Shown here piece after piece: positions 9,501 to 32,900 of a DNA stretch of 43,616 bases (position 1 is the stretch's first letter; each line of letters begins with the position of its first letter). A program made the position numbers and the translations under genes. This DNA comes from Klebsormidium nitens (lineage: Eukaryota > Plantae > Klebsormidiophyceae): the NCBI GenBank assembly GCA_000708835.1, contig DF237636.1, forward strand, positions 1-43,616, read 5' to 3'. Under the pieces are notes generated by a model. The model saw nothing but the letters and a program-made list of their open reading frames with translations. It made no database searches and was not told the DNA's origin.

Positions 9501-11338
9501 CAGGGGAGCGAAGTGGAGGGGCCGCATGGGAATAATGACCAGGAGGCGCGGGTGGGTGACAGATCTGTGGAGAGCGCCCCGTGTCCCGTGCGCAGCCTGG
9601 ATGTGGTGGCAGAGGCTGGCGCGGAGGGAGGAGGTGGCGCGACGGAGGGGCTGCCGCCTGGCAGCCAGGCCGGGCCAGGGGATGTCCAGAGCAGCAGCCC
9701 GAAGGCGGAAATGAGCAGCGCCAATGACAGCAACACAGACTCCGACTCGGACTCGGAGCGTACTCGTGCGAGGTTAGAGTCCACCTTGCTCTACGGCTGA
9801 CCGGATTTACAGTCGAGCTGGCCTCCCGTCTTGCTGCGTGGCAGGAACCATCTTAGGCTTCTCAATACGCTTTGGCCCAAAAATTCGGCCACTTCGTCGC
9901 ACTATGCCCCCGGTCTTCTCCTGCGCCTTTGGTCCGGCTACCAGCCTGCTTCCTCCGTGCAGGTTTCTGCCCCGCACCCGGTCTGCTGGCGCCCCTGCCT
10001 CGCAAGCGCGCTACGCGTCGTGGGCGCAGCACATCCCGCCTGCTGTTTCCCCCGCTGCCTCCTGGGACTCGCAGAGCAGCACCGAGTTCGCCAACACGCG
10101 GCGGCCCTCCCTCGCGCAGCGCCTGGTCAACAGTGAGAGCAGCGGCAGCGAGCAGGGCAGCCCCCGCTATGCGCGCTCCCCGCTGGGGAGCCCCCCCGGC
10201 GCCGCCTTCGGAGGCAGGCCCGCCAGCCAGCCGCCCGTCACCGAGAAGTTCTCCCTTCCAGCAACGTGAGTCTGGTGGCGATGCTGTGCCACGCCTGTGC
10301 TTTCATGGCAGAGCCTCACGAGCTCTAGAGGCGCCTCGCTCCCTTGCCAGCCACCATTCCGTTAGCCGCCACACTGGTCCCATGCAGCCGTCCGTTGCTC
10401 TGTGCCTTCTCCATCGCGGCTGGTTGCCCCAGCTCCTTGTCGCTCAGCACACCCGTCTTGACAACTCGTTTTGTCGCTTGTGCTTCAGAGCTTGTCCCTC
10501 GGTGGTGTCACCTGAGGGACCCCTCCCTGCGGCGTCGCTCTCTTCCCCGCACCAGGCTCCGGCCTCGCCTGCCCCCCACGCGGCCGTGCGCAGGAGCCTG
10601 GACCCTCTCGGGTGGTCGTCCGACGAGGACGCGGAGGAGGATCGCGGTGCACGCAAGCGCGAGATGGCAGCCGCGCTGCGCCAGCTCAAGTCCTTCCAGT
10701 CCGGGGGAACGACGCCCCACCCCGCCCAGGCCCCGCTGCAGCGCTCCCTTACGGACCCTGCCGCGTTCCAGGTGGTGAAGCGCAGCGCCTCGCCCATGCG
10801 CACGCTCTGGCGCCAGGCCACCGCCGCCGCCACCAGCCTGGAGGGTGAGCGCCCACCCCTTCGCCCTCCTCACTTGACCCTGCGAGTGGAGGTTGTGCAT
10901 GGTCCCTACCTCTTACCCTCCGTCCTGTAGCATTGTGTGTCCTTGCGTCACTACCCTGTTGCTGCCAGGCCCTAACGTGCCCCGTCCTTGCATGCCGCAG
11001 GCCCCGCCAGCAGCGCCAAACGGCTGGGCCTGTCTGCTGCGGGCCGTGCGTTGGGCCGCTCCCGCGACCCCAGCCCCTGCCCGCCCGGCCTGCTGGCCAG
11101 CCCGCGCCGCCTTCGTCCGGAAGCCTCCCCGCAGCGGGTGCCGCAAGGTTCGTCGTCGCTCTTCGAGGACGGCCCTCGCCGGCAGGAGAGCTGGGGCACA
11201 GGGCTGCGAGGTGCGGCAGGGGCAGCGGGGGCAGCAGGGCGGGCCTCCAAGACGCCCAGCCGCGGGCGGCCCATCGCGGCAGCGGCCGCCTTCTTCAGGT
11301 CCTTCACACCGGGGCGGCAGAGGGCCCAAGTGTTCTGA
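6579..11338 (+). CDS. Uncharacterised low-complexity Ser/Pro/Ala/Arg-rich protein (about 834 aa) with a SAP-like motif
   Basis: Manual model with consistent phases: 6579-6676, 7155-7226, 7815-8407, 8711-8806, 8940-9043, 9228-9772, 9963-10265, 10489-10844, 11001-11338 (2505 nt). All introns GT-AG, with an in-frame stop upstream of the ATG. The spliced segment SKTQQDLLAQHKVKPAASSGIKESLVHRLTRAL resembles the SAP consensus SGxKxxLxxRL. Confidence 0.7.
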
Positions 11339-12630: not shown

Positions 12631-15600
12631 TCACCGCCTGGTCACACTGGCCAGGACGTCGAAGTAGTCCGGGAAGGTCTTGCGCGTGCACTTGGGGTCT
12701 CGGATGGTGACGCGCGCGTCCCCGCACGCTGCCAGCGAGAAGGCCATGGCCATGCGGTGGTCGTCGTATGTGTCGATGGCGGCAGGCACCACCGCGCCCG
12801 GCGCGTGCACGATGCAGAAGTCGAGGCCCTCCTCCACCGTGGCGCCCAGCTGCAGAGCCATCCAAGCAGGGGTGCCGCCGTCAGGACGGCTCGACAGCCA
12901 TAGAGCACAGGGACACCAGAGAGCTCCCAGAGCTTGCAGTTCTCATGGTACTGCAGAGTGGAACATGAGCCACCTAAGGCTTGCTCTAAACAGGGCACCT
13001 CAGGCAATTTTTTTCTCGGCTAACCGGGGGAGGTCGGCTTACCTTGCGCAGCTCCGTGCAGATGGCGATCATGCGTTCTGTCTCCTTGACCCGCCAATTG
13101 GCCACTGCACACGCACGCGCCACGTCAGCCGTCTCGCCCTGTTCGCATGCGGTGAAACCCTTGGCAAGGAGTGGCACTCGAGCGGTGATTATCTTGACGC
13201 CCGCTCGTCCCAGGCATCCAGTGTGCCTAGCCGTAGCTGCGTGTCCGCATGGCGCGCTCACCGTTCCTGATGGCTACAGGCCCGTCGGCGAACAGGCCGA
13301 GCACGGCCAGCGTCATGGCTACGTCCGGCATTGCGTTCATGTCGATGTCAATCCCGCGCAGCCGCCGCCCCGTTGCGGGGTTCACCGGCGCCCCCGTCAC
13401 AGTCACGCTGTGCGGCGTCATCTCCACGTGGGCGCCCATCTGCTCCAACACGCCCGCAAATCCGATGTCGCCCTGCGCAAAGCCACAGCCGCCCACCACG
13501 TCAGCAGCCACCAACGGCCGTCTCTCTCGATCAAGGCCCCGGTTTGTGGGTGCGCAGCAACAGACAGCATTTCCTGGTCATCGCTAGGGCCGCTCTCCTC
13601 ACCTGGAGGCTGTCTGCCCCGCAGCCCTCCACGGTGACGGTTCCCCCCGTGGCTGCGGCCCCCGCCAGGAAGTAGGAGGCGCTGGACGCGTCCCCCTCCA
13701 CATACACGGTGGCGGGCGACGTGTACTGCTGGCCGCCGCGCACCTGAAACCAGCGCCAGGCGGGGTCGCGCTCCACCTCCACCCCAAACCTGCATCACAA
13801 CCCCCACGTCTTGCTGCTTTCTCATATCGCTCTGGGGCAGGCGAGATTCAAAACGAGAAGGCCTGTGCTTAAATGAATTTGCTTGGAGAAGGCAACCAAA
13901 GAAGGCAATTCAAGCGCGTCATAGTCCATCTCATGGTGCAGTGCCGAGTGTTGGTCTCTAGAGCGGGGTGCTTCACCTGCTCATGAGCTTGAGCGTCATG
14001 TCCACGTACGGCACTGACACCAGCTGGTCCACAATCTCAATGCGCGTGTCCCCCGCCGCCAACGGGGCCGCCATCAGCAGCGCCGTCAGGTACTGGCTGC
14101 TCACTGCACCGCTGAGGCCCACCTGCACCAATACGCCCTCCCCGTCATCAAACTCCAGACAATCTTTGATATCGCGCTTGTGTCACTAGCTCCACGCTCC
14201 TCAGCAGGTAAGACGGTCAGACATACCGTAGACACGTTTCCCCTGACCAAGGACCAGCCTTCCTTTCATTACAGGACACGACCTTCGAACTCTTGTGTCA
14301 TTCCTATGGATCCGCAGTCTCACAGCCTGCCTCTCACGGCCTGCCTCTCACGCCCGTGCTCACCTTGCCTCCCGGGAGCCCCCCCTTGGCGTTCACCTCC
14401 ACGGGCGGCCCGCTGGTCCCGAGCAGCATGTGCACGTCTGCGCCCAGCTGGCGCAGGCCGGCCACCAGGTCCAGGATGGGCCGCTCGCGCATGCGCCGCA
14501 CGCCGTCCAGCACGTACCTGCAGAAACCACCCCACTCCGCCTCAGTCCGCAGGCAGGCCCCGCCCCGCGACCGCAACAAGACCCGCACCGGCAGTCAGCA
14601 GGCAGCAGTGGCAGGGGGGGCTTGGACTGCATCGAACGCGCACGCTCACCTCCTGTGCCCCCCGGCGACGGCCACAGCGGCAGTGAGCGGGCGCATGGCA
14701 GTCCCGGCGTTGCCCAGGAACAGCTCCACTGCCGGCGCAGCCTCGCCCTCCGCCGCAGTCTGGGAAAGATCAGGGCACACGGGCAGGGGTTTAGCAGTGG
14801 GGACGGAAAGGGGGACATCATGTAGGAAGTGATGGCACAGCATGCCCACCAGTCAAAGCAGACAGTTCCAGTGGCCCAACTGCAGTTGGGGTGTCCCTCA
14901 TCTCGCCAATTGTCGCGCAGGCACCCGCTGCCCCTGCCGGCACACATCCTGGCATGCCAGTGCGGCTCACCTGTTTGGCCACCGGGAAGACCCCCCCGCA
15001 GCCGGTGACCTCCACGCGGTTCTCCTGGCGCGTCTCATGCAGTTCAATTCCCAGCGCGGTGAGCGCCCCCAGCATGTAGCGCACGTCGTCGCTGTCCAGC
15101 AAGTTCTCCACGCGCGTGCGACCCTGCAACACGCAATGCGCCCGCCTCAGGACACTGGCGCACGCGCGTTCGGTATGCCTGGCCCCCACAAAGCAGGCTC
15201 CGCCGGCAGGGGTCACACTGCTCATGTGGCTGCATGATGCGACATAGCAGCAGCAGCAGCCCCTCCCCTCCAACAACAGCCCCCAGGCTGGTAGCCAGCC
15301 AACATTCTGAGGAGGAAATGCTCTGGCTCTACGAATTGTGCAGAAGGGTGCCCAGGGCACGAAGGTGGTCACGTCAGAGCATTCCTGGCACCCCCAACAA
15401 TCACCATGAGAATCCCCCTTTGAGTGCCTCCATTGTTGCTGCGGAGCGGCTGGCTGGTGCTCACCTGCGCGAGGGCGGCCATTAGGAGCAGGCGGTTGGA
15501 CAGGGACTTGGAGCCGGGCAGCTTCACGGTGCCCTCAATGCTGCGGATGGGCTCAATCACCAGCTCCTCCTCGACTGCCACCGACGCCACCACCCCGTGC

Positions 15601-15875
15601 CCTCGCCTGCGCCATCGCTGCCGCTGACCCGCTGCATGAGTGACGCGTGGCAGAATGGTGCCGGAGAGAAAGGTGCTGCTGCTAGGGAGGGAGCACTGTG
15701 TGAACGCTGGCTGCGGCGTGCTGGCTGTGGCCCACCCCCCCGCAGCATTGCCTGCTGGCGGAGCGCAGGCACCATTACCAGTGCGCCGTTCAAAGGCAGC
15801 CTCGCGGCCTGCCCGCCCAAACAGGCCCAGGCTGGCGGCCTCCGCTTGGACCAAACAGGCAGCCAGGGCGGCCAT
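12631..15875 (-). CDS. EPSPS: 5-enolpyruvylshikimate-3-phosphate synthase, plastid-targeted (about 550 aa, 9 exons)
   Basis: Exons 15875-15465, 15123-14971, 14759-14650, 14517-14364, 14122-13977, 13789-13603, 13472-13262, 13104-13043, 12849-12631 (1653 nt, phases consistent). Motifs [66 protein letters not shown]-terminal extension of about 100 aa resembles a transit peptide. Confidence 0.98.
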
Positions 15876-16321: not shown

Positions 16322-19300
16322 ATGAGTTCGCGCAGGCATGGTGGCGGCGCGTCCAGGCCTGCTGGCCCTCTCTGGCCGCTGCTGAGCAGGCGGCGGTTTT
16401 GGCGGGGTGCCCTGCTGGTGGCCTTGCTGGTACTGGCCTGCCTGCAGCGCCAGCACCTGGGAGCGGCCATCAGCGCAATTGCCAGGAGGGGGCTGATGCG
16501 CACCCAAGGTACTGTCGGGGTGGGCATATGCCAGTTGATTGCACTATCTTCACAGCATTCCAGCTTCTGCATTTTGATGCTGGCCGGAATGGATGCAGGG
16601 AGTGATGGCAGATGCCATGTCTCTTCAATTTAGCAATAGTAAGCCCTAGCAATAGTAAGCTCCGGCACTACCACTAAAAACCTAACCTACAAAACTACCC
16701 GCTCCGCACCCGAACCCACCCTAACCCCCAAACTAACCCTACCCGTCCCAGGCTGGTGAGCTTACTATTGCTAAAGCTTACTATTGCTAAATTGAAGATT
16801 CTTGCAGATGCCTGCTTTTGACTCTGACGTGCCATTCACCTGCGATGCATTGGTGGTGGTAGCATCGCCTGGCACCCTGCAAAGCAACGCTCCCGGCGGG
16901 GCATCGAAAGCCGCTACCCCACAGACCAGCACATCTGATGGGCAGCCTATTCTCCTGCCAGGACAGCAACCAGGAACGGAGGGGACCCGCAATGTCATGA
17001 ACTTCGAGTTTCTGTGGATGGTGAGGACGAGATCTACCTGGCCGGCCCAAGCAACACCAGTTCAAACCCAGTTATCAGTACTGCACATCTGAGGCACGAG
17101 TCTCGGTAGCAGGAAGCAATTGTTGTGAGTTCTCATGGCTGCTCATAACATCTGTTCGAGTATCGCAGAAACTTGAGTTTTGCATACAACAGAGCATAGA
17201 GGTCGTACTCTTTGTCTTTGTATGCCTCTTCATCAGCCCCGCTTTCCTGTTGCACTGTGCCCACCCTGCCCCCTGCGCGCTTCTTGCAGGCTCCGTTCCT
17301 ATCGGGCGGTGGCTATGGTGCGGAGGCCACGGCATTTGTGCTCCCCCTGGCGGGCACCCCGGAGCTGCGGGCGGTGCGCATCGCGCTGCATGGGGATAGT
17401 GTCAACTACGACTATGTACAGGGCATTCCCCCCGAGCAGATGCAGGTAAAGCAGCGCAGGGCGGAGTCCTGAGAGGCCTGACATGGGCTTCAACAAGCCT
17501 TCTTCGACTTGCCTCTGTAGTCTGGGTGAACGGCACCGATTGAGTGGTGTAGAGCTTTCCAAGTATTCTTCAAGGAAACTATGTTCAATGAAGTGAATTT
17601 GACCCAGGTTGCGCCTGCTCCAACTCGCATTCCCGACGTAGTCTGAAAAGTTTCGCTTTGTCCAGAATCTGACTATGCGGCATGAGCCTCTGATGCCGGC
17701 ATCCTTCGACTTGCCTGGGCTCCCGGGGTGTATGCCGGGGCCCCTGCCCGCCGTTCTGCACCTGTGCATGCCCGCGCGTCCCCCGGACCCCCCGTCTCGT
17801 TTGTGCGTGTGGTGCAGGTGCTGCAGCGCCTGGCGGACCCCTCCCCCGCCGGCCTGCCCAGCGTGGTGGTGTGCCACAGCGAGCCGGGGGCGTGGGACCC
17901 TGCGCTGTTCCAGACCAGCCGCTGCCCCCCGCGCGGCTACCACGCAGCGCTGTACGTCATTGGGCGGACCATGTTTGAGACGGACCGCGTGACCGCGCAC
18001 CACGTGCAGGCATGCGCCCTGCTTCACTCGGGAGACGAGATGACATGACGGATGTGCAGATGCTCGTGTGCAGAAGATTGTGACTTTGTGGAGAAAGGAA
18101 CCAGCAATCGGAGATGCCGGCAAAAGGAAAGTACACAATATCCATTGATTGAAGTCGGGTCGTCTGTCCCTGATGTCGTGAGCTTGTACTTCTGCCAGGT
18201 GTCGGACAGAATATCTACTTTTGTTTCCCAGTATATCAGACATCGTCGTGCCTGCGTGTGCAGCGCATCAACCGCATGGACGAGGTGTGGGTGCCCACCG
18301 ACTTCCACGTCACCACCTTTGCGGCCAGCGGCGTGGACCCTGCCAAGGTGCGCGCGCGCCACTGCCGGCACAACTCGCAAGCGCCGTCTTCGGTGCTGCC
18401 AGCGTGTCATCTAGCGAAATGGACAGGATAACGGGCAAGCTCGATCCTCGACTCTTCCATTGGAGATATGATCCGTAAGCCTGGCGCAAGTTTCCTTGCT
18501 GCAGCGAGCTTGTCCCGCAGCTTGCCTCGTGGTCCTCCCACCCTTCCCGCTTCCGGGGCTATCCTTACTCTGCCTCGTCCCCCGCCCCCCAGATTGTGAA
18601 GATGGTGGAGCCTGTGGACGTGGACTTCTTCAGCCCACAACACGCGGACGGCACGCCCCGCGCGGCCCTGCTGCTGCCCGTGGGCAAGCGCATCCTGGGC
18701 CCGCGCTACGAGGCGCTGGACCGGCCGTTCGTGTTTTTGAGCGTGTTCAAGTGGGAGGCGCGCAAGGCGTGGGACGTCCTGGTAGCTGCCTACCTCACCG
18801 AGTTTACTGCTGCTGACGCGTGCGTGCTGCTGCTGCTGACCAACCCGTACCACTCCGACCGCGACTTCGACTCCAAGGTGCGCCGGCCGGCAACGTCAAG
18901 GCTCGGGCGGAAACACGATGGGCCAGGGCGCTTGAAGGGGCGTCGTATCGGTTGTTCTTGGCCGAAACATTCGGCTCGAGACGCGTGCACGTTGCCTTAC
19001 GCAGTGTTCGAGCCCACAAGGGAAGTTGTCTCGATTGTAGCTGGTACTTTTGTGTAGCTACAATCTATGAACATGCTGCGCCCGTCGTCCCAAGAAGGGT
19101 GGCCTCCTTTTGCGTCCGCTAATTGACGTCTCCCCGCCCTCCCCCCCCCTGGTGCCAGGTGACGTCTTTGGTGGCCCGGCTGGGCCTGACCCGCCCCGCC
19201 GCGGGTTGGGCCTCCGTATACCTGGGGGACCAGCACGTGCCCCAGACGGACCTCCCCGCGCTGTACCTGGCGGCGGACGCGTTTGTGCTGCCGTCGCGTG

Positions 19301-20015
19301 GGGAGGGCTGGGGCCGGCCGCACACGGAGGCCATGGCCATGCAAGTGCCCATTATCGCCACCAACTGGTCCGGGCCCACCGAGGTGAGCTGGGATGCATC
19401 ACGGAAGGGGTCCTGGTCTGCTGGTCCGTGCTTCTGCTGGACAGTGCAGACATGGTAATCACTGAGTGCTTCGTATACCGGACTCCTTTTTCGCGGGCGG
19501 TGGATGTTTAGGCCTTGCTGTGAGTGCGAGTGAGAGTGGGGGTCTCCGCTGGGCTGAGATACCTCCTCTTCTCTTAGGAAAGTGTTCCAGAACGTGATTC
19601 CGCGTAATCTCCTCTTGCGGCTGTGGGTTTGTGGCCTCTGATCCTTGACCGCGTGCCTGGTGTGCAGTACTTGCGGGAGGGCAACAGCTACCCGCTGCCC
19701 ATCAGCCGGCTGGTCCCCGTTGAGGGCGGCCCGTTCGACGGCCACCTGTGGGCGGAGCCGTCGGGGCAGGACCTGGCGCGCCTGATGCGCCACGTGTACA
19801 CCCACCGCGAGGAGGCGCGGGCCAAGGGACGGCAGGCGCGGCGAGACATGCTGGCATATGCGCCACAGGCAGTGGCGGGGCAAGTGCTGGCGCGGCTACG
19901 GCAGATCGAGGCCAAGCTGATCAAGGCTGGCAGGCTGGGGGCCGGAAGGACACGCGCGAGCACGCTGAGTCAGGCTGCGGACTTGATCGACGATGGAGCA
20001 GGGGAAGATCTATAG
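16322..20015 (+). CDS. GT4-family (GT-B fold) glycosyltransferase with N-terminal membrane anchor (about 566 aa, 8 exons)
   Basis: Exons 16322-16519 (the donor at 16520 is chosen for phase; the GT at 16509 does not fit), 16808-17020, 17290-17445, 17818-18009 (GC donor), 18264-18347, 18593-18877, 19159-19383, 19668-20015. Motifs WMAPFLSGGGY, IGRTMFETDR, DEVWVPTDFH, FLSVFKWEARK, and EX7E motif LPSRGEGWGRPHTEAMAM. Hydrophobic GALLVALLVLACL near the N-terminus. Confidence 0.9.
16622..16798. mobile_element. MITE-like element, 177 bp, with 41-bp terminal inverted repeats, in intron 1 of the glycosyltransferase gene
   Basis: TIRs at 16622-16662 and 16758-16798 match at 39/41. Each contains two copies of TAGCAATAGTAAGC. 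The interior is C/A-rich with CTAAC and CCCTAAC motifs. No TSD is visible. Confidence 0.85.
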
Positions 20016-20885: not shown

Positions 20886-22855
20886 TCAGGCAGGGGCAGG
20901 GGCTCCCCCAGGCGGCCCGCCTGGCCCCCCTCCCGGAGGGGCAGGGCCCCCTTGCCCCGCCCTTCGGTTTCTATGCGTGATGCGGCCCCTGGTGAGGTCG
21001 TAGGGCGAGATCTCGACCTTGACGCGGTCCCCCTGGAAGATCTCAATTCTGTTGCGCCGGATCTTGCCCGAGATGTGCGCCAGCACCTGGCACCCGTTGT
21101 CCAGCGCCACCTGGAACATGGCGTTCGGCAGCGCCTTCTGCACCTCGCCCTCCATCTCGATCGCACTCTGCTTCTTCAGCGCTGGCCGCAGCCCCCGCCC
21201 GCGCCGCTGCGGGCCCACCTCCCCAAAGTCGCCCACCACCGCCATCGCCAGCGCCACCGGATACGCCGGCCCCAGGGACAGCCGCGAGACAGCAAGCGCT
21301 CCAACAACACAGGCTATACAGGCTAGGACAGCAGCCACCCAGGCGCGCAGTGCTGCACACCGGAGACAAAATGGATGGGGGAGTCGGCGGAAAAAGCCAC
21401 GCAATATGCAGTGCCTAGCGACGATCGCTCTCTTGCATCAAACCGTTGCTAGCCCGCACGACTTTCAAAGGACGCATCCATTGTTACTGACACACAAGCA
21501 TACAAGCAAGGAACAACTTTGCAACAAGCACTCCATAGAGGCACAGACTTGCAGTATGACCCTGCTTCAAGCCCCATCGACCTCACCTGCGGGCAAGTGT
21601 CTCAGGACCGGTGCCTGCGACACGGCCTGCCCAACAGTCTCAGCTGCACTGCGTGCTTCTGCCAGGCACCACGACAGGACTTTCCGCACTGGCGCCTGCG
21701 AGTGAGGAGGCAGCACGAGGCCAGGGTTCAAAAACACACGCGTGAGCAATTATGAGGCTTTACAGCGGAAGCAGGTCCTGAGTCCTCCTGCCACGACCAC
21801 CAGAGCCCCACGCAGCACGGGGGTAAACTCGCACCGACACAGAATATGATAGCACAGCAACCGCGGCCAGTTATGACCCATGTGCAAGCACTAGCAGCTA
21901 TTCGGAGTTGTGCTAGGGCTAAGGCCCAGATCTAAGACACAAGCTCCGCCACAGCATCTGTTGGCTGGGGGATGCTAAACAGCTGAAACCGCCCCAGGCT
22001 GTGTGGAATGACAATCTGCCCTAGCCTGGCAGGGTCAACGATGACGGCATTGAGTTTATTGACCAGCAGCCCCTCGCTAGACCAAGGCCCAGGCGCTCAC
22101 TTGCGATGGTCCCTGCGTGGCCGCTGTTCGGGCAGAGGACGCAGCCTGTATTGAAGAACCGGTGCGCTCCCCTCTGAATGTGGTTCCATGCTCCTGGCTC
22201 CCTATTTGCAGCCACCGCCAGCCAGAGTGCCGCCTCATCTGTGCACCAAGGGGGGGTATCTGTGAGTCAGACCACCTTCTCCGCCCAATGCCAGCAGGTA
22301 CTTGTACAGTGAACGGGGGCTATGGTATGAGCCGCCTACTCGCATACCTACGGCCGGTGCGACATAACAAAAGTGCGCTCAATTGGCGCGCAGCATTTGC
22401 GCAATTGATTATGCTTGGAACCGATGCGAGGGAAGTGGTGCAGCAGCAGGTGGTGCCAAACTCTACTGCACACATCCAGCATGATTTGTCAGGACAAGGA
22501 CAGCATTCACCCGCCATCACGGGAACAAGAGGCCTCAGTCATGAGGGGCGCGGCGGCCTCGTTGGCGCCTCACCTGGACCAGCGCGGCTGGGCTGACAAC
22601 CGGAGCCCCTGCCGACCCCGCCTGGTGGCCCCCCCTGCCCAGCTGGGGCGAGTCACCAAGGGAAGCTCCCCTTGCGGCGGGCAGCCGGTGGTGGCGTGCA
22701 GGGCGCCAATGTGGGGTGTTCCATAGGCCGGGTGCGGCGCCACAAGGGGGACAGCAGGCACCATTACCGGTGTGGCGCTCTGGCAGCGCTTCGCGGCCCG
22801 CCCGTCCGAAGATGCTCGAGCTGGCAGCCTCCACGCGCACCAAGCTGGCAGCCAT
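20886..22855 (-). CDS. infA: Nuclear-encoded plastid/cyanobacterial-type translation initiation factor IF-1 with a long multi-exon N-terminal presequence
   Basis: The IF-1 domain [64 protein letters not shown] (about 21170-20970) is unambiguous. The upstream exons are inferred from splice sites and phase: 22855-22574, 22145-22101, 21695-21587, then 21352 (or 21298) to 20886, about 300 or 282 aa. Confidence is about 0.95 for the domain and about 0.6 for the 5' exons. Confidence 0.8.
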
Positions 22856-22944
22856 GGCGTCTGCGGTCCTGTGGCTGAACCAAAGCTATCTAGAGCACTT
22901 CTCTCTGCGTTCGCTGACATCAATTCTGGAAGGTAAGCTACCCC

Positions 22945-22976
22945 AACCACCCTAACCACCCTAACCACCCTAACCA
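22945..22976 (+). repeat. Tandem AACCACCCT x3.5 (telomere/telo-box-like) between the divergent infA and ThrRS start codons
   Basis: ccccAACCACCCTAACCACCCTAACCACCCTAACCAgcg, read directly. Confidence 0.85.
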
Positions 22977-23179
22977 GCGAGTTTGTAACCGTAACGCTAC
23001 GGTGATGTAACTGCATGGTTCTGTTCAGATCGTTACACACCGCGACTGAGAACCTCGCGTTGACCACGGAACAAAACCTGACACCCATATTGGCACACAG
23101 ATCTTCCAACTCCGTTCAGCATGTTCATGGGTGCTTTCAATCGTGCTTCCAAGGCATTGGCAGCATCACCATCGCCGCT

Positions 23180-26100
23180 ATGGCAACCAATGCGGAGGGC
23201 GTGTCCGGTGCTGCCGACAAGATGGCGAGCGCCAGCCTGGGCGACGGCCCCTCCCCATCGAATGGTCCCGCGGTGAAGGTGGCAGGCAGCGCCGGCAAGA
23301 AGGGCAAGGAGGGCGACAAGAAGAAGGGGGCCAAGGAGCTGCCCGCGGAGGTGGTGGAGTACCATCAGCAGCGGATTGCCATGTTTGAGGAGCTGCAGAA
23401 GGAGCAAAAGGAGCACCGCCAGCAAGTTGGCGGGGAGGCTATCAAGTGAGGGCTATCGCCAGCTCTTTCAAAAATCCAGGAGTGGGAAGTTGGCATTTGA
23501 ACTATGATGGTTGAATCATGTGTGAGAGTGGGCCTATGGATCACTATCACTTCTCTGCATCGCACCACCAGGTGAGGTCGGCGGCTGCCCCCTGTAAGTG
23601 CTCACTGTCAGTGGGCCTCCCTTCACATGGTGTTTGGTGCGCTGCGCAGGGTGTCCATTGGCGGCCAAGTGGTGGAGGGCAAGAAGTGGCTCTCTACGCC
23701 GTTTGACATCGGCAAGACCGTCTCCAAGGACCTCGTCAAGGACGCCCTCATCGCCAAGGTCAGCCATGGCTGTCGCATTTCAACAGCCAGTTGCAAATGT
23801 TGTCAGATTGTCTGTGTCTCCTTTCGCCGAGCAGGTGTTCTTCGGGTCGCACTCTTGATCCTCAGTCCCATTGGCGCCGCTCATGTCTAAGAGCCTGTGC
23901 GTGCGCTGAGCGGTGGTTGCGTGGTGCGTACAGGTTGATGACGTGTTGTGGGACATGGCGCGGCCGCTGGAGGGCGATTGCAGCCTGCAGATCTTCAGCT
24001 TTGAGAGCGCGGAGGGCCGGGACACCTTCTGGCACTCGAGCGCACACATCTTGGGGGAGGTGCGTGGACCACCAGTACAGCTCTCCATTCTTTCAGAGAG
24101 CCCTGAACCACTTACCATGTGCGGGATGTTTTCGATCCTGGTCTACGTTAACAATTACGCAGTATAAGCGTGTTCATTTTTGAAACAAACTTGAGATCAC
24201 GTTCCATTGTCACGCCCGCTGGTGGTTGTCTCTTCACTGCGGGTTTTGGTGGAGTGCAGGCGCTGGAGCAGGAGTATGGCTGCGACCTGTGCATCGGTCC
24301 CTGCACGACGCGTGGAGAGGGCTTCTACTACGATGGTTTCTACGGGGGGCTTACGCTGGAGGAGGAGCAGTACAAGGCGATCAAGGCCAAGGCGGGGTGG
24401 GCCGTGAAGCAGAAGCAGAACTTTGAGAGGATTGAGGTCACGCGCGAGCAGGCCATGCGCATGTTTGACAAGAACCCTTTCAAGGTCAGGCCACCACAAG
24501 CCCACGTTAGCCCTCGCAGCAATTGTCAAGTCGCTCTTGCAACCAACGATTACTACCGGTTTGGATATCGGACTTGTTGTCTCAAACTTCTCACTTGCTC
24601 AAACCAGTGGTCTTCTCAGTATTGTCAAGTTGGACACCTCTATTGCGGAGGCTGACCCCCGGTGCGTGTCCCCAGATCGAGATCATCCGCGAGCTGCCTG
24701 AAGACAAGACCATCACGGTGTACCGCTGCGGCCCCCTGGTCGACCTGTGCCGCGGGCCCCACATCCCCAACACCGGCGCCGTCAAGGCCTTCCACATCTC
24801 CAAGGTCGGAATTCTCCCTGCCCTACCGGCGCCTGACTCAACTCTGCTACAGTTTTGCGCGTTTCACTCAGCGTTCAACCTTTTCGAGTTTCCTCTGGTG
24901 AAGCGGGGGAGTGCTGTGGCTGCCTCAGGAGCTGTTGCTATGCGACGATCACTGTTGGAGAGCTGCCCTGTCTGCCCGCTGCCGCTGAATGATGTGTGGT
25001 GCGCTGAGCAGGCTGCTGCGGCGTACTGGCGTGGGGACCAGACGCGGGAGAGCCTGCAGCGCGTCTATGGCATCTCGTACCCCAACGACACCCTCCTCCA
25101 GGTGGGAACCCCGACCGTCAGCTGTAAGCATGCGTCTCCCCATATAGCACACTGAGCTTCTTCAGCCGGCCTCTACAGAAAAGAAAGACGCAGGTTGCGT
25201 GTTGCCTGCGGCAGGCTCTGCTCGTGCGTGTCTTTGTCGGGAACTCATCATTGCGGGTGTGTGGCGCAGGAGTACTTGCACCGATTGGAGGAGGCCAAGA
25301 AGCGCGACCACCGCCTGCTGGGCATGCAGCAGGAGCTCTTCTTCTTCCACCCCCTCAGGTACGCGCCGCAAGCAGCCCACCAGCACAGCAGACACTCCTT
25401 CAGACACTCCTTCCTCTCATCTTGGCTCAGTTGCCGGGTTGTGTTGCTCCATATCTCTCAAAGCCGGCATCTCAGGGTCAGAGCATTGCCGCGGTTGATT
25501 CCTTTGCCCTGAAACTCGGCGGCGGTATGTTGCAGCCCCGGGAGCTGTTTCTTCTTGCCGCACGGCGCGCGCGTGTACAACCGGCTGCAGGAGTTCATCC
25601 GCGGGGAGTACCGGCGGCGCGGGTACCAGGAGGTGGTGACGCCCAACATGTACAACCTGGACCTGTGGGTCACGTCCGGGCACGCCGCCAACTACAAGGA
25701 GAACATGTTCCTCTTCGACGTCGAGAAGCAGCAGTTCGGCCTCAAGCCCATGAACTGCCCCGGCCACTGCCTGCTCTTCGACCACCGCGTGCGCTCCTAC
25801 CGAGGTCAGCAGGAGGCCCCACTCCATCCCGCAATTTGCAGAGGCGCCTTGCAGATTGGCCTTCTTTCATACCAATACCGTGGGGCGAGATGAGAGCTCG
25901 GTCGTGAGACGATGGTCGCTTGTCGTACAATTCAGAGCATCTCTCTGAGCGCAACGTAGGGAATATATGACTCGTAGGAACCTGTTCTTCTAGACAATAC
26001 TCCTCTCCCTGACTCTCGTTTCCCTGCTGCTTCCAGAGTTGCCGTTGCGGTTGGCGGACTTCGGCGTGCTTCATCGGAACGAGGCGAGTGGGGCGCTCAC

Positions 26101-28280
26101 GGGGCTCACGCGAGTGCGCAGGTTTCAACAGGTGGGCACCGCAATACACCTGAAGACCGCATTCTCACGAGGTATCGTTGCCTCGGGGGGCAAACAAACG
26201 CCTGGCTAGCATCAATCTCAGAAGGTCCTCGGCTAAAGAATCTTTGAAAGACCGGCTGACGCTTTGGGACAGGCCATATGGGCTACCTTGCATTGGCAAG
26301 GAGGTGATGGGCCTCATACCCGGTCGCATCCTGACGTGCGCGGTGTGGGCGGGTGCTGCAGGACGACGCGCACATCTTTTGCACGGAGGCGCAGATCGAG
26401 GAGGAGGTGCGGGGCGTGCTCGAATTTTTGGCGCATGCGTACGGCATCTTCGGCTTCGAGTTCGACCTGGAGCTGTCGACGCGGCCTGAGAAGTACCTCG
26501 GGGAGCTCGCCACGTGGGACAAGGCCGAGGCCTTCATGGCCAAGGCGCTCGACAGCTTCGGCAAAAAGTGGCAGGTCAGTCCCAGGCCGCGCGCTATTCT
26601 TCTCAAAATGTAGGGAGATATAGAGAGGCCGAAGGAAGGATCCGCGAATTACGACCAGGGCAAGCGACGAGGCCCGCGTGGTCATCGGAGAATATGAACA
26701 CGACCTGGGCCTGATACAAAGCTGTTGTCGCGGAACAATGCCTCAACCGCTCTAGACGGTCACGGACCAACGACAAGGGCCGTCGCCTCGACAGATGCTT
26801 TTTCTGGTCGTTGCACAGCTGATAGACCATTGATGTTGGGGTATGGTGTTGCAGATCAACGCGGGCGACGGCGCGTTCTACGGCCCCAAGATCGACATCA
26901 CGGTGTACGACGCGCTGAAGCGCAAGTTCCAGTGCGCCACCATCCAGCTGGACTTCCAGCTGCCCATCCGGTTCGACCTGTCGTACAACACGGAGAGCCT
27001 GAGCAGCGACGAGAAGACGCGGCCCGTCATGATCCACCGCGCGATCCTGGGCTCCGTGGAGCGCATGTTCGCCATCCTGCTGGAGCACTACGCCGGCAAG
27101 TGGCCGCTCTGGCTCAGCCCGCGCCAGGTCATCGTCTGCCCCGTCTCCGAAAAGCACCACGACTACAGCCAACAGGTGAACCCGCCCCACACACGCCGGC
27201 TGCTTTGTGTCGGCCACGCAATGACCGTGTGAATCGCCCCAACTGCAGGAGACCCTTCCACCGGAGAGATTCTTGAGGAGGCGTGTCGAAAGGAAGGTTT
27301 AGTACTGCAGTTTGGGATCAGCGGTCGATGATAATCGGACACAGTATACTCAGCGTATAAGGCGTCGTTGGCGTGGCTGACGTGGCTGCGTGTGGCGTGT
27401 GCAGGTTGCTGCGGAGATCGAGGGGGCGGGCTTCTACGTGGAGGTGGACTACAGCGACCGCAAGCTGCCCAAGAAGGTCAGCACCCCGCCGCACTCGTGG
27501 CATAGTTTGAGCATGCGGGGCCCTGGCTGCCTGCAAATAAAGGCGTCTACTTTGCCATCAGGACTGTCGGATGGACATAGTGTCTCTGCTATTTATAACA
27601 GGGGCTCTGGTTATCTGACCCGCGCTCCTCCTTCCCCTCAGATTCGGGAAGCTCAGTTGGCCCAACACAACTTCATCTTGGTGTGCGGAGCGGAAGAGCT
27701 GGAAAGCAAAACGGTGAGCATGCGCCGCTTCAGCTTGAGCCAGGCACTGTCGCAGGTAGCCCCAAGTGTTCGGTAGGCATGGGAGGAAGGTCAACAGAAG
27801 AGAATGGCTCGTGGCGGACTGTTTGGGCCTCAGGTCTTGGTACGCATGCCATCTAGAAAAAGCACGTTTCAGAGAGTTCAAGACGATGACCGTCCGGGCA
27901 TCAGCAATATGAGCATCGAGACCCTTGGGCTGGATTGCTCCGCGGTCTCAACGAAAAGGTTTGCGAGGGCGGTGACGCCCTCACTTGAATTGTCCGAACA
28001 CGTCGCCAACGGTTTTTATGGTCCGCATGTGCTTTTGAAAGGGGGCATCTGATAGGACAGTGGGGTTTCTTCTCATGGGTGGACGGTTGAGGAGTTCCTG
28101 TTGGCTTCGGGAGCCTGGTGCCTTGTGGATTGACTTACTTAGGCCGCTCTTGACTGATACACGCTGATTGCGGTCGTGTTGCAGGTGAACGTGCGCACGC
28201 GGGATAATCAGGTTCACGGAACAAAGCCGGTTGCAGACTTCATTGCAGATCTGCGGCGACTCGTGGGAGAGTATAAGTGA
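23180..28280 (+). CDS. thrS: Threonyl-tRNA synthetase, eukaryotic cytosolic type (about 723 aa, 14 exons)
   Basis: Exons 23180-23445, 23650-23758, 23934-24059, 24260-24484, 24676-24804, 25012-25101, 25270-25358, 25536-25804, 26037-26131, 26362-26574, 26855-27175, 27405-27476, 27642-27713, 28185-28280 (2172 nt). TGS domain, editing-domain motifs [10 protein letters not shown] and DLCRGPH, then [46 protein letters not shown] and [10 protein letters not shown]. Confidence 0.97.
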
Positions 28281-29934: not shown

Positions 29935-32900
29935 TTATAGTACAGCGGGCACCGGCGGGACAGCCTTGCCCACTTCCAGGCGGCTCAGCCGTACGGTCCC
30001 CAGCAGGTGCTCCGGCAGCTCCTCCTCCGTGTCCGCCTGCACACCACACGCCCATCAGCACCGCTTTTACACAATACACCGACAGCAAAGGAGTGCACCG
30101 CAAGCATGCCAAGCACTGCCCCGTGCCACTCGGCCACTGCCGGATCTCGTAAACTGGCGGCTCGCGGGATGAGACCCAGCTATGCATTGCCATGACAAAT
30201 GACAGAACAGTGCAGTACCCCTGTGTACTTGGGAATGGGCCCCTAACTGCACGCGAACATGTACCCAGAACGAAGCGCTGATTTGACAGATGCAACGTGG
30301 CCTAGCCGCGCTGGGGACGTGGCTGACCTGGATGAGGAAGGCCATGTCGACGGTGAGCTTGGATAGGTAACCCAGCACCAAGCCCACCACGCCGTTGGCC
30401 ACGCTGCTCGACCCAATGTCGATGTCCAGCTGGGTGCAGCACCACGGGGAGGAACACGGGTCAGCCAGGAAATACGAAGAGCACGAACCCATGCAAACGC
30501 ATGCGGGCACCAGTACCAAGCAAGACAGAGATGGAGCTGCCTACACGCATGAACCTGGGAACACTGCAGCACATCTGCAGCTTTGCCCCGCGGTTACAGA
30601 GCCATCGGGTGCTGCGGAGAGTATCTGGAACTTTCGAGGGCCCGAGTGCGAGCCTGACCTCGAGGTAGCTGGGCCCGCGGTGGTACGTGATGCGCAGCGC
30701 CTCGCCCACCAGGCATGCGCGCTGGCCGACCGCATTGCGCACCAGCCAGCCACCCTGCACAGCCCAGCGCGCAGTCAGGCAACACTGCCGCAGAGCAGGC
30801 ACTGACAGCAGTAAACTAAGAGGCAGCAACGACCGTATTTTGACAGGATCCGGACCGTAGCTCACGCATCACCTTCGGGATGAAGTAAAGCTTACAGAGA
30901 GGCCCCGCTTCTGATTACAGCCGACTCAGCACATTGCTACCTGGTTGAAAAAGAACCAGGCGCGCTGTGGGGCGTGGGCTGACCTGTGCGATGTTGGGGA
31001 TGAGCTTGAAGCGGCTGTTGCGGAAGGCGTCGGTGTCGTTGACGAAGCGGTGCAGCAGCGGCCACTGCTCCAGCGGCTGCAGCAGCGCGTAGTACAGGCA
31101 CAGGCTGTAGCACTCGCGGCCGGGCACCTGCAACACCGGGGTCCGCACAACCGTCACGCCACAGCCCCGTTGGGTGACAACTCATACAAGGCTCCCTAAA
31201 AGCGACGTGCAGCCGTTTGTGCTTTACTCAGGCTAACCCGCAGCGGAATCTACCTGGCGGGTTTCAGCGTAAGGGAGGGCCGCACCCGGTTAAACTTGGG
31301 AGCCTTACCTGCAGGTTGATGACGCAGAAGAAGGGGCTAAAGTCGGACGCTTTTTGTACGAGGCAGCCGGGGCGCGCCGCAAGGTGGTCCTGCCGAACCT
31401 TGCTGCGGAACCAGTCCATGCCCACGAGGTGCATCAGGGGGGGACCGCCCGACTCCTGCACGCACACCCCCACAGGGTTAGGCCGGGGACCACTTCCATA
31501 ACGTCTTCGAACGTGAGTGTGACCACCTTATCTTGAAGTGCTGTAGCTTCTAGCGTGCTTTGAGAAGCTCACTGTGCACGGCTGGCCAGATAGCAACTGG
31601 CGAGGACAGGGCTTGCACGAGGGCAGTTGCAGGTGTGCTGCGGGGGTACCTTTTTCTTGTCGATGAGGTAGGAGGCGCTGCGGATGAGGAAGAGGCTGCC
31701 GGGCGGGCACGCCCACGAGTGCTTGGCGTCCAGGCTCACGGGGCCCTCCGGCACCGACGACAGGCCCTCCACCGACCGGCTGAAACGCTGCCCCGCAGAC
31801 AGGCCTGCAGCAGCACGACAAAGAAGTGACTGTCATGGGTGGGGGCCCAAGCGAGGGGTAACCAGGCAACATCAGATTATGCATTCGCACAGAAACCTTC
31901 AGATTCAGGATGTAGAAAGGATACAGATATCCGGAATACATACAGCGCGTGGAGAATATCAGACACGATGGCGCCTCTTGGCAATCTGAAAAGGGACGCA
32001 AGTCCTCGTTTGATCCAGAGACGATACGAACAACGAAGCAATCGAGGGTGTCAGCCGTTGGCATGGTTGCTAACCTTCGTCCTTGGGCACGCGCGGCGGG
32101 GACGAGGGGCGGGGGGTGAAGCACGCCATAGGGCCGGCCTCCTTGCGCGACTTCCTCCCGCTGGGATGCTTCAGGAACGGCAGCGGCAGGCACATGGCGG
32201 CCAGGCCGTCCTGCACGACACGCCAACGGCGGTTAGGCCGTGAGCCGTGAAAGGAGACCCGAAAAGCAACAGACGTCTTGCTGGCATCAGGCAGCGGTAC
32301 CCGTGCAAGATCTCCCCAGGTCAGGCATAAGCGAGACAATACGCAGCGGCCGAACGGCTCACGTCGGCGTCGCTGTCGGACTCCTCTCCCTCCACCTCGG
32401 CCTTGTCCGCGGCATCCTGCGCCTCGCGCGCCTGCCACGTGGTCTCCTCCCTAGCGTCGAAGAACTCGTCGTCCTCGCCCGGGTCCAGGAAGCTGTCGCT
32501 CACAGCCGCCTTCGGCCCCGCCCCGCCATCCTCGGTCGCGCTACTACCCATGGGAGCCGCGACCCGTGATGCAGAGCTTGCGAGGGGCTCTTTTCCAATC
32601 TCTGGCGCCAGGCTTTTGTCAGGAGGTGGCATTGGGAGGAGGCGCGGCCGGTCGGGCTGGCCATTACGTGGCTCACAAGACGTCCAGATGCGGTCCCAAG
32701 CCTCTAGTTTGGGCTCCCGTGATGCGAACATCTCACGCAGCGCTGCAGCACCCCAGGGACAGAACCCGTTAGAAGGGGCCACCCGGCAGATCATTGCGGA
32801 GTCTTCGCAGCATACGAACAGCGGACGAGTAGCTGTCAGAAGTCATGTGACGGTGTGCCATAGTCTGGGCAGTGCGTTACCTGCGACCCGGTTGAGCATG

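Follow-up and report, generated by a model that had tools for sequence, protein, structure and literature searches.

The nuclear gene infA of the streptophyte alga Klebsormidium nitens, which encodes a bacterial-type, presumably chloroplast, translation initiation factor (IF-1), begins with a coding exon that is paralogous to the start of EPSPS, a gene located 7 kilobases (kb) away on the same strand. Both genes lie in the window, the 43,616-nucleotide (nt) contig DF237636.1 of assembly GCA_000708835.1, which was taken whole. The explanation that we favour, and that as a whole we hold to be rather probable, is that a leader was copied from the 5′ end of EPSPS into infA exon 1 before the lineage split from that of a sister species, and has been kept since then as an import peptide. 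Paralogy, exon structure, conservation between orthologues and purifying selection are the observations on which this explanation is built.

The sister species, called species B, is represented by L001, a 76-kb contig (JGI sample 3300060284), and by L007 (JGI 3300060285), which contains its EPSPS open reading frame (ORF) P0156. Species C is a more distant relative, represented by L002 (JGI 3300034941) and L003 (Logan SRR14092360). In addition, L005 (Logan SRR23617307) derives from a relative of K. nitens, and P0155, an ENA entry, from a very close relative.

The first coding exon of infA

The segment 22855-22574 is the true first coding exon of infA. The public protein GAQ90804.1 (P0121; 331 residues), which carries, by homology, the name 'chloroplast translation initiation factor IF-1 [Klebsormidium nitens]', agrees in every residue with the product of four exons on the minus strand, 22855-22574, 22238-22101, 21695-21587 and 21352-20886, with GT-AG borders as in spliceosomal genes. 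A first-pass annotation of the window had designated the segment as a putative first infA exon; it is the annotated first coding exon and provides the first 94 residues of P0121. The translations given in that annotation were correct as quoted. Of the two small exons by which it linked this exon to the IF-1 domain, 21695-21587 agrees with P0121, while the start of the other at 22145 had to be corrected, as exon 2 begins at 22238 in the public model, in the same frame, and is likewise longer in species B. The search with the 172-residue IF-1 ORF excluded targets of more than 301 residues and yielded relatives only; P0121 was retrieved via one such relative, P0003.

A bacterial-type IF-1 domain (PF01176) is the sole domain of P0121, where it is present at full length (residues 241-304, model positions 1-64 of 64, E 1e-24). 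PF01176 scores of 87.8 and 86.3 bits compare with a gathering cut-off of 30.2, and the ORF 21404-20886 carries the complete domain. In the protein 240 residues precede the domain, and in the gene the presequence exon (22855-22574) is separated by introns from the domain exon (21352-20886). The 94-residue product of exon 1 is rich in Ala, Arg, Gly, Pro and Ser with a net positive charge. Residues 1-140 are without confident structure in a single-sequence AlphaFold2 model of P0121 (mean predicted local distance difference test score of 45), which would be compatible with a leader, yet is uninformative.

Paralogy of the infA and EPSPS leaders

The similarity between the starts of infA and EPSPS, already reported in the first-pass annotation, is far beyond chance. 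The products of the two first exons share 31 of 47 residues (BLASTP, E 2e-17), and at the nucleotide level positions 22859-22746 of infA align with positions 15870-15757 of EPSPS over 116 nt with 75% identity (blastn). Exactly two copies of the motif, those of infA and EPSPS, are present when the whole window is searched by tblastn and blastn. The 3-residue gap that had been placed into the alignment is not needed, as the ATG of infA pairs with codon 4 (CTG) of EPSPS. The EPSPS of species B (P0156 on L007) starts directly with MAASLVRLEAAS, a MAASLV start, and because the species B enzyme begins there this type of start is taken as the ancestral start of EPSPS. The ancestral ATG is thus kept in species B EPSPS and in the infA copies of both species, and is replaced by CTG in K. 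nitens EPSPS (window 15867-15875 compared with L007 576); in the EPSPS of K. nitens and L005 the ATG has moved 9 nt upstream with a gain of three residues. Over its first 118 nt, K. nitens infA is 79.7% identical to species B EPSPS, and the EPSPS genes of K. nitens and species B are, over the exon, less similar to each other (67.7%).

How far the copy extends is less evident. About 100 residues precede the conserved 'LPGSKS' region in EPSPS; the enzyme domain PF00275 begins near the end of EPSPS exon 1, and the ORF 15959-15369 runs into it. Between infA and EPSPS of K. nitens no similarity was found past codon 47. Past this codon both infA copies show a weak collinear similarity to species B EPSPS, with an offset that fits one 2-codon indel; ungapped nucleotide tests gave 0 of 200 and 6 of 200, and protein Smith-Waterman alignments p values of 0.016-0.044 in four of six pairs. 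The weakly aligned stretch corresponds to the second half of the EPSPS transit peptide and does not reach into the mature enzyme; infA exon 1 stops about where the EPSPS leader ends (...ASVA), ahead of the mature EELVIEP...LPGSKS part. We therefore read the copy, given this weak similarity, as comprising essentially the leader, in the order of 95 codons, with the mature enzyme excluded. The 'shortened middle' by which the first-pass annotation had accounted for the different exon lengths (94 and 137 codons) gives way to an exon that appears collinear with the transit-peptide part and simply devoid of the mature part.

The common exon end AAL(V/A)Q/GTGAG (the slash marking the exon border), also adduced for the duplication, is indeed present in the sequence. 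Species B infA exon 1, on the other hand, ends with ...PVAQ/GTGAGC, and the similarity of the donor regions is only about two standard deviations above that of other CAG/GTGAG sites (six controls). As the similarity is weak and species B infA does without it, the shared 'AAL.Q/GTGAG' end is probably splice consensus plus chance. Upstream of the coding region infA has no similarity to the region upstream of EPSPS, nor even to the upstream region of its orthologue, the 80 nt 5′ of the infA ATG being unalignable even between orthologues. A shared promoter or 5′ untranslated region of infA and EPSPS was considered and set aside on these grounds, since with orthologous flanks that are themselves unalignable the test is uninformative.

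Conservation, splicing and selection in related species

In species B the motif exon is situated approximately 1.8 kb upstream of the IF-1 exon on L001. Exons 1 and 3 are equal in length in K. nitens and species B (282 and 109 nt), the phases are the same, and donors of the CAG/GTGAG type as well as AG acceptors occur at homologous places. Each of the upstream exons 1-3 is significantly similar between the two species (0 of 500 shuffles each). Exon 1 is collinear over all 282 nt with zero indels, its second half is 45% identical compared with 27% for shuffles (0 of 1000), and in species B it is free of stops in the coding frame only. The ratio of non-synonymous to synonymous substitution rates (dN/dS) is 0.32 between the infA orthologues over the first 47 codons (Fisher p 0.0016), and the comparison of the two paralogous exons, infA and EPSPS, which had been suggested along with a comparison of synteny and presequences in a sister species, gave 0.22-0.35, likewise indicative of purifying selection. 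Exon 1 stands out as selected because neutral DNA is saturated at the distance of K. nitens and species B. In both species exon 1 is thus coding sequence under purifying selection, and the syntenic, motif-bearing exon on L001 dates the duplication before their split.

For the last two joins, species C shows directly that coding exons located upstream are spliced to the IF-1 exon. Removal of two GT-AG introns from L003 yields L002, in which a single frame of 410 codons continues through both joins and on into the IF-1 domain. K. nitens and species B have their last join at the position that it occupies in species C; infA exon 3 is homologous to species C exon 2 (1 of 500 shuffles), and the exons that follow the first one in species C are homologous to exons 3 and 4 of K. 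nitens. The leader of species C comprises about 250 residues with two hydrophobic segments and is encoded by a long first exon. This first exon (L003 695-1346) has no similarity to exons 1-2 of K. nitens or species B, and within 2 kb upstream in species C infA the EPSPS-type motif was not found. A Pfam match of the species C leader (PF02592, 22.4 bits with a cut-off of 27.2) was dismissed, as it reflects hydrophobic sequence.

Distribution of the motif

EPSPS exon 1 carries the motif in four taxa, K. nitens, the source of P0155, L005 and species B (L007), with P0151, P0155 and P0156 as motif-bearing exon-1 ORFs, and in all four taxa the motif runs on, within a single exon, into the remainder of the leader and the mature enzyme. 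A more distant EPSPS (P0157 on L008) has an unrelated leader. Among infA genes the motif is found in K. nitens and species B; the L005 contig ends before the 5′ end of infA.

A motif profile of 50 positions was searched against 1.84 billion representative proteins (50% identity) and matched the L005 EPSPS exon-1 ORF (E 6e-21) and one bacterial repeat protein, P0152 (E 1e-8), and nothing else. P0152 was not accepted as a motif carrier, as it matches via four repeats, which is taken as a low-complexity coincidence. In a metagenome scan with the motif profile, none of 166 pattern matches was confirmed; a scan with P0121 provided one distant IF-1 of 49% identity. That the motif is not a widespread repeat, the objection raised beforehand against a specific duplication, is supported, if not proven, by the two copies in the window and by the profile search.

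Within the motif, a 15-nt block (22754-22768; 15765-15779; L005 5311; L007 663; L001 8221) is identical in four of five copies and deviates by one base in the fifth. It encodes Gly-Asn-Gly-Ala-Cys, contains a donor-like GGTAAT string, and in the four identical copies all synonymous sites are unchanged. Outside the block synonymous divergence (dS) is about 0.9-1.25, with a GC content at third codon positions of 0.73. This suggests a possible constraint at the nucleotide level.

Peptide, fragment or nucleic-acid element

Two explanations would deny the exon 1 product a role as import peptide. According to one of them, the exon is a dead EPSPS fragment or an artefact of gene prediction, and transcripts of IF-1 begin further downstream, with the conserved internal ATG at 21245 as one candidate. 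It would fit with this that the joins of exon 1 in K. nitens are based on the gene model and conservation rather than on reads, that the ORF P0004 of a relative, from a EukProt Trinity assembly, starts at the conserved internal Met, and that a leader of 240 residues is unusually long. A fragment would hardly have retained identical exon lengths, phases and splice sites, an open coding frame alone among the frames in species B, and a dN/dS of 0.32 (p 0.0016) between orthologues while adjacent non-coding DNA became saturated, and the species C frame is open across both spliced joins for all of its 410 codons. We consequently regard this objection, which had been anticipated in the first-pass annotation, as highly improbable. 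Scarcely better are the prospects of the other explanation, by which the conserved piece would act at the level of nucleic acid, for instance as an alternative splice donor or in the control of translation. The 15-nt block, with its unchanged synonymous sites and its GGTAAT string amid a dS of about 0.9-1.25, speaks for such a function, but over the 47 codons the rate of change is two to three times higher at synonymous than at non-synonymous sites, so that the main constraint is on the peptide, and use of the GGTAAT site as the donor for EPSPS exon 2 would break the reading frame.

Origin, direction and timing

If the leader indeed derives from EPSPS, the duplicated 5′ piece of the EPSPS coding region would have begun at the ancestral start codon and covered the transit peptide of about 95 codons, entirely or for the most part, leaving out the mature enzyme. 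The copy would have landed approximately 1.5 kb upstream of the IF-1 domain exon, and would have been joined to it through two small exons by GT-AG splicing, before K. nitens and species B (L001) separated. Purifying selection would have maintained the peptide in infA and EPSPS ever since, the shared N-terminal residues, about 47, being perhaps the part of the leader that is recognised at the chloroplast envelope and retained in both proteins on that account. An import role would be the most likely function of the exon 1 peptide, which stands at the head of an IF-1 protein, while its paralogue does so in an enzyme of the plastid shikimate pathway.

The pairwise distances among the copies of K. 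nitens and species B are all similar (60-70% identity at the nucleotide level, dS about 0.9-1.25), and the tree of the copies is without resolution, hence the duplication is at least as old as the split of the two species and not measurably older. EPSPS is the likely donor, since it must have had a leader long before, since the motif is contiguous with leader and mature enzyme in one exon in every sampled taxon, and since infA of species C is without the motif. The direction from EPSPS to infA, as assumed in the first-pass annotation, is accordingly favoured, if unproven in view of the copy tree.

Several points weigh against this explanation. The tree of the five motif copies has a bootstrap value of 50, and the EPSPS motif data cover four taxa, with species C not among them, so that the direction is not polarised. 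Three acidic residues (Glu) occur in the first 27 residues of the motif, which is atypical of a transit peptide. With an extension of 240 residues, which is very long, and a strongly hydrophobic helix in it, the N-terminus of mature IF-1 appears not placeable. Transcription of exon 1 and its joins in K. nitens would follow from the public gene model and from conservation; 20 sequencing runs, whose kind is a guess, contain fractions of 0.29-0.77 of the sampled words. Representatives at 50% identity can hide carriers of the motif; P0121 and full-length EPSPS were themselves not returned by the profile search. The literature text available contains no explicit statement on the infA status of the Klebsormidium plastome. 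In the available parts of two sources, infA is not listed among the genes that all 20 streptophyte plastomes have kept (PMC4877394), and among charophytes it is the plastome of Klebsormidium that has the smallest number of protein genes (PMC4007539).

The most serious competitor accepts the same duplication, but not as the founding event. Nuclear infA would have possessed a working leader, which the EPSPS-derived exon later replaced or preceded in the lineage of K. nitens and species B, an instance of transit-peptide turnover by exon capture. In species C infA is nuclear and spliced, with exons homologous to exons 3 and 4 and an identical junction; its first exon is unrelated to exons 1-2 of the two other species, the motif was not found in the 2 kb upstream, and species C and species D fall outside K. 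nitens and species B in the IF-1 tree. Should this tree be right, an infA that was already nuclear and spliced captured the EPSPS-type exon, or else species C swapped its own first exon. The support for the split of species C and D is weak (51%), only two clades are compared so that loss or replacement in species C is equally parsimonious, and the species C transcript is not complete at its 5′ end. A late capture is thus a possibility to be reckoned with, although we would not bet on it, and of the proposal that local duplication rendered infA functional in the nucleus the paralogy stands while the founding role has become doubtful, given the unrelated first exon of the nuclear spliced infA of species C. 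Less plausible, and on balance unlikely, is a reverse direction or a third source, in which the motif was born in infA or another gene and copied into EPSPS over an older leader start. The unresolved tree of the copies, the unrelated leader of the more distant EPSPS (P0157/L008) and the closer relationship of species B EPSPS to K. nitens infA (80% at the nucleotide level) than to K. nitens EPSPS (68%) would be in line with it. EPSPS, however, has been in need of a plastid leader since long before any recent relocation of infA, in all four taxa its motif shares one exon with the remaining transit peptide and the mature enzyme, the weak collinear similarity spans the whole EPSPS transit peptide, and a third carrier was not found by the profile search among 1.84 billion representative proteins.

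Gene order and further features

The proposed donor and recipient are still linked, as the first-pass annotation had noted, at a distance of 7 kb in K. nitens. In L005, whose introns are still alignable with those of K. nitens (about 77%), the order of infA 3′ end, glycosyltransferase gene and EPSPS is kept, and the linkage of EPSPS and infA is thus common to both. L001 shows the same order of the threonyl-tRNA synthetase (ThrRS) gene, infA and the glycosyltransferase gene as K. nitens. Synteny in species B is broken (L001 14000-19939 compared with window 29935-32855), where the EDR2-like gene is inverted and located downstream of the glycosyltransferase gene; EPSPS was not found within 10 kb in the region downstream of the glycosyltransferase gene on L001. 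The coordinates of all features are collected in Table 1. In the window, the 324-bp spacer between infA and ThrRS includes a short tandem repeat at 22940-22978.

Table 1. Features of the infA and EPSPS locus of K. nitens (window coordinates) and infA exons of species B and C (coordinates on L001 and L003)
Feature	Coordinates	Strand	Basis or remark
EDR2-like gene	29935 upward	-	annotation
Threonyl-tRNA synthetase (ThrRS)	23180-28280	+	annotation
Spacer infA (-) / ThrRS (+), presumed bidirectional promoter	22856-23179	.	gene ranges
infA (chloroplast IF-1)	22855-20886	-	annotation
infA exon 1, presequence exon, 94 codons, phase 0, donor CAG/GTGAGG	22574-22855	-	first 94 residues of P0121; orthologous exon on L001
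infA exon 1, part paralogous to EPSPS start: codons 1-47 and about 5 nt 5′ of ATG	22715-22859	-	BLASTP, blastn, dN/dS
infA exon 2, 46 codons, phase 0 to 0	22101-22238	-	P0121; conserved block, acceptor and donor on L001
infA exon 3, 109 nt, phase 0 to 1	21587-21695	-	P0121; same length in L001 9502-9610
infA exon 4 (hydrophobic helix, IF-1 domain, tail, stop)	20886-21352	-	P0121; PF01176
Hydrophobic helix, residues 178-200	21282-21350	-	Kyte-Doolittle
IF-1 domain	20970-21161	-	PF01176
infA stop codon	20886-20888	-	exon 4
GT4-type glycosyltransferase gene, between proposed donor and recipient	16322-20015	+	annotation; divergent from EPSPS, convergent with infA
EPSPS, 550-residue product, PF00275	15875-12631	-	annotation
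EPSPS exon 1, 137 codons: transit peptide and first ~35 mature residues; proposed donor	15465-15875	-	annotated coding sequence start at 15875
EPSPS codons 4-50, paralogous to infA codons 1-47	15726-15866	-	BLASTP, blastn
Species B infA exon 1, 282 nt	L001 8134-8415		ATG-initiated, MAASLV...EAAS...GNGACC
Species B infA exon 2, 165 nt	L001 8825-8989
Species B infA exon 3, 109 nt	L001 9502-9610
Species B infA exon 4	L001 9954-10429
Species C infA exons	L003 695-1346, 1679-1818, 2219-2699		L002 is the spliced form

The helix of P0121 just upstream of the IF-1 domain (residues 178-200, Kyte-Doolittle peak of 2.6 over 19 residues) is kept in three species, K. nitens, species B (L001 at about 9960-10030) and species C (residues 255-279 of the frame-2 ORF of L002). 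Such a hydrophobic helix is unusual in a soluble initiation factor and might anchor the protein in a membrane or belong to a bipartite signal. It is followed by a conserved Ala-x-Ala-Met stretch. The internal Met213 of P0121 (21243-21245), within 'A-M-A-x-x-G-D-F-G-E', is kept in all four related species, and the EukProt Trinity ORF P0004 begins exactly at its position; translation may alternatively start there, or a processing site may be close by. After the IF-1 domain follows a Pro/Gly/Ala-rich tail of about 25 residues (20889-20969), which is conserved in four related species (C-termini of P0001, P0003 and P0004) and is missing from the bacterial-type and Mesotaenium IF-1 matches.

Comparison with known systems

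According to the available text of two sources, it is well established that a leader can be taken over from another nuclear gene in which it already existed, as exemplified by rice mitochondrial rps11, rpl32/SODcp, accD and rps7, while the origin of most such leaders is not known (PMC7488351, PMC8429499); nuclear infA leaders described so far are designated there as 'novel', their donors not being identifiable (PMC8429499). In Populus, Salicaceae and Viola, rpl32 is fused to the transit peptide of a Cu-Zn superoxide dismutase (SODcp) (Ueda et al. 2007; Cusack and Wolfe 2007, in PMC7488351, PMC8429499). As in that case, the plastid-type nuclear gene infA of K. nitens has a leader traceable to another nuclear gene for a plastid protein, and leader and organelle-type domain are on separate exons. 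Whereas, as these sources describe it, rpl32 was inserted into the SOD gene or a copy of it, and some lineages make both proteins by alternative splicing, in K. nitens the leader part of EPSPS alone appears to have been copied, and EPSPS and infA are distinct genes, separated by 7 kb in which an unrelated gene is located.

Angiosperm nuclear infA (Millen et al. 2001, in PMC7488351; Viola INFA, PMC8429499) shares with the algal gene a nuclear bacterial-type IF-1 domain with an N-terminal extension. The angiosperm leaders are, in the text available, short and with no identifiable donor (PMC8429499), whereas the K. nitens leader has a paralogue in EPSPS and is part of a 240-residue, four-exon extension with a hydrophobic helix. 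For rice mitochondrial rps11, with presequences from atpB and coxVb (Kadowaki et al. 1996, in PMC7488351), the same source reports that duplication or exon shuffling provided a targeting sequence from an existing nuclear gene encoding an organelle protein, which resembles the situation proposed here; rps11 differs in that it concerns the mitochondrion of an angiosperm, with donor and recipient physically unlinked.

The general picture of how relocated genes gain targeting is unchanged by these findings, and infA of K. nitens would represent a new, well-preserved case of a known route, in a streptophyte alga. To our knowledge, the origin of the transit peptide on relocated plastid genes is known for a handful of cases, all of them angiosperm. 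With a putative donor and recipient that are both identifiable and 7 kb apart, a copy that is conserved in species B, and a relative with a different first exon, this locus may provide a natural system in which to ask how much of a transit peptide suffices for import, why the first approximately 47 residues have been retained in two unrelated proteins, and whether leaders are swapped after a gene has already been established in the nucleus.

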